64,000 nt of DNA. Source: Octopus sinensis (Eukaryota). The translations under genes and the position numbers were made by a program. The DNA lies in assembly GCF_006345805.1 (NCBI RefSeq), contig NC_043022.1:6634001-6698000 (forward strand). The letters run 5' to 3'. A model generated the notes under the pieces. It ran no database searches. It was not told the DNA's origin and saw only the letters and a program-made list of their open reading frames with translations. Of the stretch, positions 1,798 through 13,551 are shown piece after piece (the first letter of the stretch is position 1; each line of letters opens with the position of its first letter).

Positions 1798-1871
1798 CTT
1801 GAAGTAACTTTATCTATTTCATTGATATTTTCATTGCAAATCAGATATTTATTGGCATCATTATCAGGACT
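1798..1871 (-). CDS. exon (SPDNDANKYLICNENINEIDKVTS); terminal (AGG TAG) or spliced at AG|gtagga
   Basis: atttttag| acceptor, open 74 nt in phase 0. Confidence 0.6.
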
Positions 1872-10800: not shown

Positions 10801-13551
10801 TTCGCTCCTTTGGCTCATCTCTTGAAGCTACGTGCCGTCCAGAGCCATCCTGCAATTGGGTAGTGTCCCACCAGCTTCCCACACACTGAGAGCAGTTCCC
10901 GTCTACTCATGCTGGTGCCCAGTTCGGGGAACTCGTTCCCTCGCCGGAACACCAATGCACCGGCATTGTCTCTCCATAGCTTGAGGCCCAGTGCAGCACC
11001 TACCTCCATTGCATCTGGTGGCTTGGCGATCAGTCCAAAACTCTTCAGGTGACCTATGACCTCCGTTGTTGGCATTACAGTTTCATCCACCAGAATGTCA
11101 TCAATGTACGAATTGGTGGCCCTTTTTACTCTGTCCACCTTTCCCAGGATGGCCTTGAGAATTGTTGCCATAATCTTTGGTGCTGAATTTAGCCCGAACC
11201 CCAACCTGGTCAGACAGTATGTCCGGCCCTTATACCTGACAAGCTGATAGTTCCACAGTCTCTCAGCCACATGCACCTGTAGGTATGCCAACTTCAAATC
11301 GACGATCATGGAGGCCCCTGTCACCTGCCTCCACTCTTGCAAGGTGTCCCCGCAGACATCTGTGGCCTCGCCGCCTCTATGACATGATACGTGGTCATTC
11401 AGCTCTCGGAAGTCAAGCACTGGCCTGACCTTATGCTTTGTGGGCTGTATCACTGCCATCAGTGGCAGGATTCCGCTCTCTTCTTTTTCCCAAGGGATCA
11501 ATATGCCCTCCTTAATCCACCGCTCCACCTCCCCCTTGAACTCACTTCCAGCATCTCCTTTTAGAGTTTGCTGATAGCAGCCCACTTTATTTTTTAACGT
11601 CAGGGGCTCTCCCTTCCAGTGCTTCTCCACTGTCCACCTCTGGCTATCGAAGACAGCCTGAAAGTCCTGGGTCCCCAATGCATACTTTTCTTCATGGTTC
11701 TCACCAATGCACAGTCTTGCATACACGGTTTCCCTGCAACCCGAATGTTACACAGGCCTCGTTGACAGTGACACCTCCTAAACAGGTGATTGCATCCATC
11801 CCCATCACCACATCAATCTCGTCCACCAAGTGGCCAACCACAATTGCTTGCAGCATCAGCTTTGTTCCTTGCACCATAATCTGTGCATCTGTAATGCCTT
11901 CACAGTGTACCTTTCTTCCATTGACTGCTCTTACACTGCTTTCTCCAATCCACGTCTCTACCACTTCTGGAGTCATGAGGGTCGTCGTACACCCTGTGTC
12001 CACAAGGGCTCGCGACATCTTCCCCTCCACCAGAATGTCGACTACAGGTAATGATGATTAACGCGCCTCTATTGATTTGAAGGGGCAACTACCAGCGCAG
12101 TAGTCTCCCTTAGACCGTTTCCCCGCAGACATTCGCTGGCTATATGTCCTGTTTCTTGACACCAGTAGCAAATGACCTTAGGCTTGGGTGACTTGCAGTC
12201 TCATACCATGTGCGGGCCCTGACACCGGAAACACTGTCCTTTGAATGGTCGCACACGTTCCTTGTTTGACCCCTCTCCACTACTCCTTGCTTGGCCACTT
12301 TTCATTGTTGCAGTCACTGCTACCAGTGGCGTCCTGCAACACAAAACTAGCACATGAGCACGAGATACAATGTCTGCCATCGTCATAGAGTTAATGTTCG
12401 GCAGCTTTTGCAACTCGACTGACATGTGGTCAGGAAAGCCAGTCACAAACGCTAACTTAACCGTTCGGTCCAGTGATTCTCCTTCATATCCTGCCAGTTT
12501 AACCAATCTTCTGTGTTCTTTTGCAAATACATTGACCTGTTTGCCAGACCATTTTGCTTTCCCCAGGCGAGTGTACGCTTCGAACATTCCCTCTGCAAAG
12601 GTCTCCATCAAACGGATTTCTATTTTTTCTACACTAAGTTGGTCCCTCTCTTCCATTTCTAGGTACAGTGCCAACACCAAACCATCTAGGTACACCAGTA
12701 TAACACTCACTAAGTCGTTTATACCGTGGAACTTCGCCACCAACTTCATCTTCAACCAAGCGACTACATCAGCGTCACCACAAAACGGTTTGACCATATC
12801 GTTCGAAATGCAGACTACACTCATCATTGGTTTTTTTTTTTTTTTTTTTTGTTATGGGCCGAAATAGCTTGTAGCGTGATGGAGGAAGAAGACAACAGAA
12901 AAAGAAGCCAACGGGAGAAAGAAATACAAAGACCTTACCTGTTGACCTAAGCGGGATAAGCGATCACTGTCAAGAAATAAATAAGTCCTTGCACGCTGCT
13001 GTCTCTGCTCGAACTGCCCGCACATGCTTCCTGCCCATGCATGCCTCATGGCTGTTCCACCAGCCCCTGCAGTCTTCACTTCCGTCTATCTAATCTGCAA
13101 TCCTCTCCACCAACACCACATAGCTCATCACAGCTCATAACACCACAAACATCACAATATACAACCAAAAATGGTCAACTTATACATCAAGACAACTTTG
13201 GAGGAGCAAAAATTCTAGTGAAGTTTGGAAAGATAGTGATGATTTTTGAATGTTTACACTATAAACAATGTCAACTGGTAAAACAGAAGTAAAGTAAGGT
13301 GGCATGGAATGTGTCATTTAACAGGCCAATCTTACCAATTCCAACATGAAGAATTAGATGTTAAAACGAAGAGAGTCAGGACATTTAATAATCTAATAAA
13401 ACTTAACCTTTGAGTATTTCTTCTTGGATTTTTTCTTATTTGAAGCATCTGTTATCATTTTCAATGTGTTATATCCATTGGCAACACTCGCACGCCATTT
13501 TGCATCTGACTGCCTTCGTCTTACACGGACTGAATTAGTGCGTCGAGCCAT
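1798..13551 (-). CDS. STRA8: STRA8-like atypical bHLH protein gene, multi-exon, ~400 aa; C-terminal exon structure uncertain
   Basis: Phase-compatible GT-AG exons 13551-13408, 8267-8192, 7037-6932, 5824-5701, 5427-4990, (2763-2635), 2504-2376, 1871-1798 give MARRTNSVRVRRRQSDAKWRASVANGYNTLKMITDASNKKKSKKKYSK|AHILQETVNHINFLESILANFLSEKKKFVDSG...DINEVRNEFS. This aligns with my recollection of human STRA8 (RRRLSQARHRATLAALFNNLRKTV...SKWQVLNKAKSHIPELEQTLDNLLKLKASF...SLEEVKKEY). An in-frame TAA lies 21 nt upstream of the ATG, right after an AG acceptor, so a non-coding 5' exon is implied. Confidence 0.8.
2376..2504 (-). CDS. exon (LSCGTSTFTPLKSPPIFDLGLSPITTPCIKQLNNYLPCGLYVP)
   Basis: ttttcttttcag| acceptor, CCG|gtaagc donor, 129 nt, phase 0-0. 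Confidence 0.7.
2635..2763 (-). CDS. candidate exon (RPLCYKNLNPGLQSWGSVIISPSISATRLGGIESDDNMALILE)
   Basis: 129 nt open, phase 0-0, GAG|gtatct donor; weak acceptor. Confidence 0.45.
4990..5427 (-). CDS. STRA8-like exon 5 (146 codons, low-complexity S/T/K/N-rich, TP/SP motifs)
   Basis: ttttacttatag| acceptor, CAG|gtaata donor, 438 nt fully open, overlaps ORF 4897..5268. Confidence 0.75.
5701..5824 (-). CDS. STRA8-like exon 4 (SSMMRKCNFLDDLLNEIYELDNQISPETGCFDSSQSPSETQ)
   Basis: ttacag|tag tandem acceptor, |gttaat donor, 124 nt, phase 2 to 0. Confidence 0.7.
6932..7037 (-). CDS. STRA8: STRA8-like exon 3 (KFVDSGLLPETSNILSDINEVRNEFSAKQAGIFS)
   Basis: tttattcag| acceptor, |gtaaat donor, 106 nt, phase 1 to 2. 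Confidence 0.8.
7704..8073 (-). mobile_element. non-autonomous Helitron
   Basis: 5' TCTCTATATAAA; 3' hairpin cccgagcaacgccggg followed by CTAG|T. Confidence 0.75.
8192..8267 (-). CDS. STRA8: STRA8-like exon 2 (helix 2, AHILQETVNHINFLESILANFLSEK)
   Basis: tttttcag| acceptor, |gtaaag donor, 76 nt, phase 0 to 1. Confidence 0.85.
8366..8819 (+). mobile_element. Tc1/mariner-pogo type MITE
   Basis: TA TSD; ~27-bp TIRs ccgtatttgacggcatataggacgcac / gtgcgtctaatatgccgtcaaatatga; internal D/E-rich coding relic. Confidence 0.8.
9094..9510. mobile_element. solo LTR (417 bp) inserted in a tRNA-SINE head
   Basis: TGTA...TACA termini, 4-bp TSD GACT (9090-9093, 9511-9514); removing it restores the SINE head. 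Confidence 0.8.
9884..10230 (-). mobile_element. RTE 3' UTR fragment (others at ~18850-19100, 45290-45557, 50750-50992, 51415-51670, 57990-58260, 59030-59480)
   Basis: matches the 3' UTR and (GAT)n tail of the 59715-60908 element. Confidence 0.8.
10650..13142 (-). mobile_element. 3'-truncated, degenerate Ty3/Gypsy LTR retrotransposon in intron 1 of the STRA8-like gene
   Basis: gag 12827-~12070 with two CCHC knuckles (CFRCQGPHMV*DC, CYWCQETGHIASEC), protease LVDTGC, RT (VLDFRELN, DLKLAYLQV, YIDDIL), start of RNase H (VWCDA); no integrase or second LTR; LTR-like unit 12850-13142 with TGTTATG...CATAACA termini. Confidence 0.9.
13408..13551 (-). CDS. STRA8: STRA8-like coding exon 1 (basic region, helix 1, loop; 48 codons)
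   Basis: ATG at 13551, open 144 nt, ends AAG|gttaag (phase 0). Confidence 0.85.

Follow-up and report, generated by a model that had tools for sequence, protein, structure and literature searches.

The stretch of DNA analysed here (the window) comprises 64,000 nucleotides (nt) of the Octopus sinensis genome (contig NC_043022.1, referred to as C26; the window is C26:6634001-6698000) and contains the greater part of the coding exons of LOC118768054, a minus-strand gene with its ATG at window position 13551 and a RefSeq product of 605 amino acids (aa) entered as an "uncharacterized protein". The gene has 12 coding exons, seven inside the window and five past its left edge, and continues for ~28 kb to the left of the window, ending in a stop codon at C26:6605994. 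We extended the seven window exons by hand and placed the five further ones by searching the window's own genome. All introns inside the window are GT-AG, and the spliced model is identical, letter for letter, to the RefSeq protein. In the genome search each exon matched this locus alone at E<=1, the gene thus being single-copy. The analysis described below leads us to regard the locus, with a probability of about 0.8, as the single-copy O. sinensis member of a bilaterian gene family that STRA8 represents in vertebrates.

A sequence-only reading of the window had proposed a STRA8-like gene whose basic helix-loop-helix (bHLH) domain is split by an intron of ~5.1 kb. The split was found as described, the intron being 5,140 nt long, phase 0 and GT-AG, with its junction at 13408/8267. 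Exon 1 encodes residues 1-48 of the LOC118768054 protein and ends in phase 0 after ...KKYSK (AAATACTCAAAG|gttaagt, donor AAG|gttaagt), and the minus-strand reading across the junction gives the same peptide string as before, the joined exon 1 and exon 2 peptides running MARRTNSVRVRRRQSDAKWRASVANGYNTLKMITDASNKKKSKKKYSK|AHILQETVNHINFLESILANFLSEK|KKFVDSG...DINEVRNEF. The left limit of the gene in that reading, position 1798, proved to be the donor of coding exon 7. Two features were not part of it, namely the five exons to the left of the window, which include the HMG box, and an LxCxE motif in exon 7.

Two domains of the octopus protein score above their Pfam cut-offs, HLH at residues 20-63 (22.3-22.9 bits; cut-off 20.7) and HMG_box_2 at residues 416-473 (29.1 bits; cut-off 22.4). 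In an AlphaFold2 (AF2) model based on 32 orthologs, helices 8-35 and 48-78 form the bHLH and are followed by more helices at 92-112 and 118-132, after which ~280-300 disordered residues lie between the bHLH and the HMG box, the latter a three-helix bundle at 411-471 with a predicted local distance difference test score (pLDDT) of 83-96. Foldseek with this bundle returned HMG boxes only (HMGB1, HMGB3, BAF57 and SSRP1; probability 0.99-1.0, root-mean-square deviation ~2 A, 56 columns), and the family profile run against the PDB found the HMGB3 and HMGB1 boxes at ~E 2e-4, with ID1, at only 12 bits, as the best solved bHLH. The octopus C-terminal domain is like HMGB-type boxes (HMGB1/HMGB3 box B, SSRP1, BAF57) in both fold and sequence, but occurs as a single box embedded in a bHLH protein. 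Since only two of the 32 family members reach HMG_box_2 at E<=0.01, the HMG box is degenerating across the family.

The disordered linker carries both a basic KCR(K/R)xL patch and the LxCxE pocket-protein motif, which in octopus reads LICNE (residues 349-353), with L349, C351 and E353 nearly invariant among the 32 orthologs; in the same alignment T305, P306 and K308 of a TP.K motif are invariant or nearly so. Conserved blocks of the family in the bHLH and its extension are RVRRRQSDAKWRASV..CY.TLK...SKA.ILQETE.HI..LE and R.EF..KQ, and those downstream are LxCxE with its acidic tail, (P)KCR(R/K)xLE, DFDGY..FY....W..M..E and a C-terminal Q(V/I)VPE. The last of these occurs near the C-terminus in mollusc, annelid, sea-star and amphioxus members, at times in more than one copy, and is absent from vertebrate STRA8.

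The basic region is atypical. In the Pfam HLH register, in which R20 of octopus and R45 of echidna STRA8 fall at profile position 13, it lacks Glu9, Arg10 and Arg12 and has Ala at position 10 and Trp or His at position 12. The canonical E-box Glu9 position is occupied by Asp16 in octopus (Asp also in the invertebrates and amphioxus) and by Gln in vertebrate STRA8. The sequence-only reading had listed Ala in place of the E-box-reading Glu among the features shared with STRA8; octopus and STRA8 do both lack the canonical Glu, but the Ala that they share stands at position 10 and not 9. Given this non-canonical basic region, reading of E-boxes in the usual way would not be expected.

Relationship to vertebrate STRA8

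When 1.84 billion representative proteins were searched with a profile of 32 spiralian orthologs, 138 scored at E<=1e-3, six of them with the length and sequence of vertebrate STRA8. The four that were looked up are all named STRA8 (Coregonus, Alosa, Rhea and Tachyglossus; E 1.6e-4 to 1e-3), the other two are close in sequence to named STRA8s, and the STRA8 matches cover two stretches, the bHLH and the HMG-like region. The other long matches inspected were family members or multi-HMG proteins (many of the short matches lay outside this inspection); no other bHLH family was found among the vertebrate-length matches examined, and none of the matches from the 1.84 billion proteins was MEIOSIN-sized. 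For the reverse comparison, a hidden Markov model (HMM) of 10 vertebrate STRA8s from fish, bird and monotreme was run against ~180 fetched proteins, with E values at Z=1e6. It gave octopus 55.8 bits (E 2.5e-13), with domain scores of 36.2 bits for residues 10-116 (bHLH and extension) and 18.4 bits for the HMG box, and gave amphioxus 76.8 and Lottia 72.6 bits, compared to <=3 bits for five MEIOSINs and <=15 bits for 14 multi-HMG decoys. As to reciprocity of best matches, all vertebrate forward matches named or read are STRA8, and the reverse run was confined to the ~180 fetched proteins.

Profile-profile and pairwise comparisons gave the same picture. With hhalign, the family aligned to the 10 vertebrate STRA8s over both the bHLH with its extension (97.3%, P 2.7e-11, 117 columns) and the HMG region (95.2%, P 2.9e-8, 72 columns), and BLASTP of the octopus protein against Rhea STRA8 found 29% identity over 102 aa (E 1.8e-8). 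A single-sequence search with the amphioxus protein (P0079, XP_078586822, "uncharacterized") returned tetrapod STRA8 at 40-46 bits, with spiralian proteins scoring about as high (octopus 34 bits); judged by its sequence, this protein is a bridge between the spiralian members and STRA8. It belongs to the same family, with RRRMSDAKHRASV, EFEGYLLFY, QVVP and LxCxE, and, unlike octopus, shows the chordate layout, in which HMG follows soon after the bHLH and LxCxE is C-terminal. The Pfam family PF23175 (bHLH_STRA8) matches 27 of the 32 orthologs at E<=0.01 and does not match MEIOSIN, and its cut-off of 25 is exceeded by amphioxus (39.4 bits) and Tachypleus (26.6 bits). Precomputed PF23175 matches on the Lottia, Saccostrea and Pinctada orthologs bear out the earlier suspicion that automated annotation already holds invertebrate STRA8-like entries.

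Gene structure provided a further line of comparison. Introns were mapped in echidna and whitefish STRA8, in the Lottia and Asterias orthologs and at the Mastomys MEIOSIN locus, and four intron positions, with their phases, are common to octopus, Lottia, whitefish STRA8 and echidna STRA8. Shared intron 1 is phase 0 and follows the loop (..YSK|AHIL, ..VSK|ALIL, ..PAK|WKIL, ..ATK|LQVL), so that the phase-0 intron after SK, singled out earlier for comparison with vertebrate STRA8, has the same position and phase in whitefish and echidna. Shared intron 2 closes, in phase 1, a helix-2 exon of exactly 76 nt; shared intron 3 is phase 2 and lies 15 residues on from the E of EV(R/K)x(E/D)F; and shared intron 4, also phase 2, falls in the codon preceding the Y that opens the HMG domain (DFD|G-YFFF, EFE|R-YLYF, EFE|G-YLLF). 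Asterias has shared intron 1 and also intron 2, there with a helix-2 exon of 82 nt. The shared introns thus independently support common descent with STRA8 in particular.

Shared motifs were checked on the retrieved bird, monotreme and fish STRA8s. Octopus and STRA8 have in common the basic-region signature RRR-x-S-(D/Q)-A-(K/R)-(W/H)-R-A, the helix-2 and post-bHLH extension motifs SK..(I/V)L....HI..LE and EV(R/K)x(E/D)(F/Y), on both of which the sequence-only reading had relied, an HMG-type domain that starts with (D/E)F(D/E)(G/R)Y..F(Y/C) (DFDGYFFFY in octopus, EFEGYLLFY and EFERYLYFC in STRA8) and continues ..(I/V)S..W..L..E, and LxCxE with an acidic tail. Nearly every family member, and each STRA8 checked, has LxCxE. 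The motif stands between bHLH and HMG box in protostomes and the sea star but at the very C-terminal end of the protein in amphioxus (P0079, residues 643-647) and vertebrates; it was either moved, or lost and then regained, at the base of the chordates. The proteins also differ in size (STRA8 ~330-390 aa, octopus 605 aa), in the HMG domain, which is above the Pfam cut-off in octopus and below it in vertebrate STRA8, and in the KCR(K/R)xL and Q(V/I)VPE motifs that octopus has in addition. Taken together, the forward and reverse profiles, hhalign, the four introns and the motifs uphold the STRA8-like identity first proposed from the window.

Word-indexed and exhaustive searches extended the family to ~35 molluscan orthologs (gastropods, bivalves, a chiton and octopuses) and, among other spiralians, to the annelids Owenia, Capitella and Helobdella, the brachiopod Lingula, the nemertean Tubulanus and the bryozoan Watersipora. 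Outside Spiralia, members occur in the chelicerates Tachypleus and Ixodes, the echinoderms Asterias and Lytechinus, and amphioxus. Individual entries include K1PNY4 of Magallana gigas, LOC106167240 of Lingula and LOC117305245 of Asterias. The databases name all of these invertebrate members "uncharacterized" or "BHLH domain-containing protein". Metagenome and transcriptome assemblies (Logan, JGI and a marine metatranscriptome) contain further members (P0127, P0157, P0130, P0156, P0047 and P0091), of which P0130 resembles the tick protein and the Q/H-rich P0127 and P0157 may be of arthropod origin. Because orthologs are found in both protostomes and deuterostomes, the dating of the STRA8 family to the bilaterian ancestor, proposed in the sequence-only reading, is supported and, as far as sequence can tell, the family is much older than vertebrates. 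The tree unites amphioxus with vertebrate STRA8 in one clade (98/92), which branches from among the invertebrate members; beyond this clade the tree was not used for orthology.

MEIOSIN and competing explanations

Some observations weigh against the assignment to the STRA8 family. The octopus protein itself reaches only 16.6 bits with PF23175 (E 0.008), under the gathering cut-off of 25. The HMG part of the family profile gives the STRA8 HMG-like region 18-25 bits and unrelated HMG boxes 15-23 bits, and since these score alike the HMG domain alone does not discriminate. Homology of the LxCxE motifs is uncertain (hhalign P 0.099), because the motif order differs between protostomes and chordates. 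Moreover, the tree was built without other bHLH families as outgroups and its deep nodes are unresolved, and the MEIOSIN sample consists of rodents only. Two genome searches carry no weight on either side: an exon-wise PF23175 search of the octopus genome gave sub-threshold noise only, missing LOC118768054 itself, and a single whitefish STRA8 query matched nothing in that genome, LOC118768054 included. Neither result is informative, since exons of 25-48 codons break up the conserved regions.

MEIOSIN (BHMG1) is the other vertebrate protein to be considered, as it likewise carries a bHLH at its N-terminus and an HMG box downstream, within ~600 aa, and its HMG helix LWRGMTLEEKK resembles MWRGLSAEQKK of octopus. 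We found MEIOSIN sequences with a query of two short, X-padded peptides translated from a knock-in oligonucleotide printed in PMC13637641. No relationship to the MEIOSIN bHLH was detected by hhalign with the family (P 0.2) or by BLASTP (E 0.18), and the family HMM had no bHLH domain match in the five MEIOSINs. The 13-21 bits that the family profile gives MEIOSIN come from the HMG only, the hhalign match to the MEIOSIN HMG (P 1.2e-4) is generic, and BLASTP of octopus against mouse MEIOSIN reached a best E of 0.013 over 20 residues. Pfam HMG_box scores 31-37 bits in MEIOSIN and the octopus protein is also above an HMG Pfam cut-off, a generic feature and not a MEIOSIN-specific one. LxCxE and the EFEGY motif are absent from mouse MEIOSIN, and mouse MEIOSIN searched against the octopus genome found generic HMG exons only (best E 0.46), which is weak evidence of absence. 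Of the four introns, only intron 1 is common to Mastomys MEIOSIN, whose helix-2 exon is 112 nt long and in which the HMG is interrupted by a different intron, with none preceding it. In Mastomys MEIOSIN a phase-0 intron interrupts the bHLH between loop and helix 2 (..KKYTK|KEILL), as in STRA8 and the invertebrate family, and this intron is the only structural hint that the MEIOSIN and STRA8 bHLHs might share an origin.

That LOC118768054 is an ortholog of MEIOSIN and not of STRA8 is therefore very improbable: it has a bHLH and a Pfam-significant HMG box in ~600 aa and one intron in common with MEIOSIN, set against the gap between octopus and MEIOSIN with the STRA8 profile (55.8 vs <=3 bits), the marginal BLASTP match (best E 0.013) and three of the four introns unshared. 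Still harder to credit is a generic bHLH factor resembling STRA8 by chance or convergence. In its favour are the short bHLH and an octopus score under the bHLH_STRA8 threshold, but two domains, each independent of the other, point the same way as four introns and two linear motifs, no other bHLH family was among the vertebrate-length matches examined and ID1 reached only 12 bits; the forward and reverse profiles, hhalign and the shared introns effectively refute this explanation. A scenario that we consider unlikely, yet well ahead of these two, is that a single ancestral bHLH-HMG gene was duplicated in early vertebrates to give both proteins, STRA8 keeping the ancestral bHLH while its HMG decayed and MEIOSIN keeping a canonical HMG while its bHLH diverged, which would make the octopus gene pro-orthologous to both. 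Both vertebrate proteins do combine a bHLH with a downstream HMG or HMG-like domain (PMC13637641), the octopus protein, at 605 aa, is of MEIOSIN size and, like MEIOSIN and unlike STRA8, has an HMG box above the Pfam cut-off, the phase-0 loop/helix-2 intron is also in MEIOSIN, the STRA8 and MEIOSIN bHLHs show a weak profile similarity (P 0.006), and the octopus gene is single-copy, with no MEIOSIN-like locus detected in that genome by what was a weak search. On the other hand, three of the four shared introns are missing from MEIOSIN, whose HMG has a different, internal intron, the MEIOSIN bHLH shows no significant match to the family (P 0.2), MEIOSIN has neither a bHLH_STRA8 match nor LxCxE nor EFEGY, and amphioxus groups specifically with STRA8 in the tree, although fast evolution of MEIOSIN, represented here by rodents alone, could mimic such a grouping.

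The strongest competitor leaves descent from the STRA8 family in place and concerns function. On this view meiotic entry in cephalopods is not under the control of the gene; chordates or vertebrates would have gained the meiotic role, and the ancestral task would have been another transcriptional or cell-cycle one. We give this possibility appreciable weight, though short of even odds. The protein is fast-evolving and mostly disordered, its motif order differs between protostomes and chordates, and we found no paper on the function of an invertebrate member; against it stands the conservation of the STRA8 toolkit (dimerising bHLH, HMG-like domain and LxCxE) over more than 500 million years.

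Exon map and remainder of the window

The coding exons are listed in the table below, with those past the left edge given in contig coordinates. An Octopus vulgaris model of the gene (P0001) starts within exon 3, omits exon 4 and uses an internal exon 5 acceptor at window position ~5109, so that the bHLH is missing from it and its only name is "HMG box domain-containing protein". It is either an annotation error, that is, a truncated mis-prediction, or an alternative isoform.

Table. Coding exons of LOC118768054 and the introns discussed (window positions unless prefixed C26)
Feature	Position	Strand	Content
Coding exon 1, 144 nt	13408..13551	-	Start codon, atypical basic region RVRRRQSDAKWRASV, helix 1, loop
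Intron 1, 5,140 nt, phase 0	8268..13407	-	Encloses a same-orientation degraded retroelement fragment (~10815-12851)
Coding exon 2, 76 nt, phase 0 to phase 1	8192..8267	-	Helix 2 AHILQETVNHINFLESILANFLSEK; acceptor tttttcag|GCCCAT
Coding exon 3, 106 nt, ends in phase 2	6932..7037	-	Post-bHLH helix with DINEVRNEFSAKQAGIFS; AF2 helix 92-112
Coding exon 4, 124 nt	5701..5824	-	Weakly conserved linker; kept in the RefSeq model of O. sinensis
Coding exon 5, 438 nt	4990..5427	-	Predicted disordered linker, pLDDT < 50
Coding exon 6, 129 nt	2376..2504	-	LSCGTSTFTPLKSPP..., with the family TP.K motif
Coding exon 7, 74 nt	1798..1871	-	SPDNDANKYLICNENINEIDKVTS; LxCxE motif (LICNE), then acidic residues
Intron 7, first part	1..1797	-	Gene runs on leftward past the window
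Coding exon beyond window	C26:6632059-6631982	-	CRKRLDK motif
Coding exon beyond window	C26:6626076-6625990	-	Placed by genome search
Coding exon beyond window	C26:6610239-6609995	-	HMG box
Coding exon beyond window	C26:6609128-6608911	-	QIVPE motif (residues 510-514)
Last coding exon beyond window	C26:6606101-6605994	-	Stop

The retroelement fragment in intron 1 comprises, in different frames, a gag-like piece bearing zinc knuckles, aspartyl-protease sequence (Pfam gag-asp_proteas/RVP) and part of a reverse transcriptase (RVT_1, YIDD), and it accounts for a GC-rich bump (0.48) at 10-12 kb. No other protein-coding gene was seen between 14 and 64 kb of the window, the remainder of which consists of repeats and microsatellites. 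Two pairs of near-identical open reading frame (ORF) fragments recur in the window, one at 3563-3754 (minus strand, inside an intron of the gene) and 34834-35403 (plus strand) and the other at 19879-20340 and 59681-60322 (plus strand), with sequences ...HSSHDFRKHFFTLRVAEAWNKLPASVVSCRSTASFKTSMLPEIRQHYT for the pair that has a copy within the LOC118768054 intron and ...RLYDACVRTAMLHGSETWA...RRLRWYGHVARMDEDS... for the other. These fragments had no Pfam match at E<=1e-3 and look like dispersed retrotransposon tails. Long microsatellite tracts of the TA/CA type at 18086-18628, 26664-27340, 31805-32529 and 35984-36625 give rise to spurious open frames on both strands (YIYI.., HTHT..).

Proposed function and significance

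In mouse STRA8 the bHLH mediates binding to MEIOSIN and an HMG-like domain is present (PMC13637641), while LxCxE binds RB1/p107 and is needed for timely pre-meiotic S phase (PMC10600341). The octopus HLH is predicted to be dimerisation-competent, and the HMG box and LxCxE with its acidic residues are also conserved across phyla. The protein may thus be a nuclear transcription regulator that dimerises through its HLH, with the HMG box contacting or bending DNA in place of E-box reading, and LxCxE could engage an Rb-family pocket protein and so couple the transcriptional programme to G1/S through the RB/E2F axis. By analogy with STRA8 it would act in germ cells at the mitosis-to-meiosis transition, and a role at meiotic entry, which we infer purely from that analogy, would most plausibly be the function of the gene. 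As to retinoic-acid response elements, the window contains no DR2 or DR5 and two DR1 sites, both intronic, from which nothing can be concluded.

The sequence-only reading had noted that STRA8 is usually called vertebrate-specific. It has often been so described (PMC4574967), but this limit had already been relaxed to stem chordates in 2013, when Rodriguez-Mari et al. (PMC3769385) reported an amphioxus Stra8 ortholog, of which XP_078586822 may be the same gene model. In the literature we found no report of an invertebrate STRA8 beyond amphioxus, nor any mention of LOC118768054 or of an invertebrate "stra8-like" gene, and papers on sea urchin, sponge and Platynereis in which Stra8 is named cite mouse work only. 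With the octopus gene a known family gains a new, unnamed member; it does not represent a different kind of system. The apparent novelty lies in the distribution in protostomes and echinoderms, together with the full set of domains and motifs.

A cited study that sampled no further than hagfish proposed that STRA8 is a later, lineage-specific amplifier of a MEIOSIN core. The phyletic spread of the STRA8-type gene reverses that expected order of origin, in which the MEIOSIN core comes first, and bears on a question that the field calls open. It also gives a name to ~40 "uncharacterized" RefSeq and UniProt entries and makes the question experimentally tractable in manipulable invertebrates such as oyster, Platynereis, sea star and amphioxus. 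As a speculative extension, to which we attach little confidence, the bilaterian ancestor may have had a single bHLH-LxCxE-HMG factor that joined the roles of STRA8 (dimerising bHLH and RB binding) and MEIOSIN (HMG DNA binding) and already gated the mitosis-to-meiosis transition via RB/E2F. If this were true, STRA8-type control of meiotic entry would be ancestral to Bilateria and not a vertebrate add-on to a MEIOSIN core.

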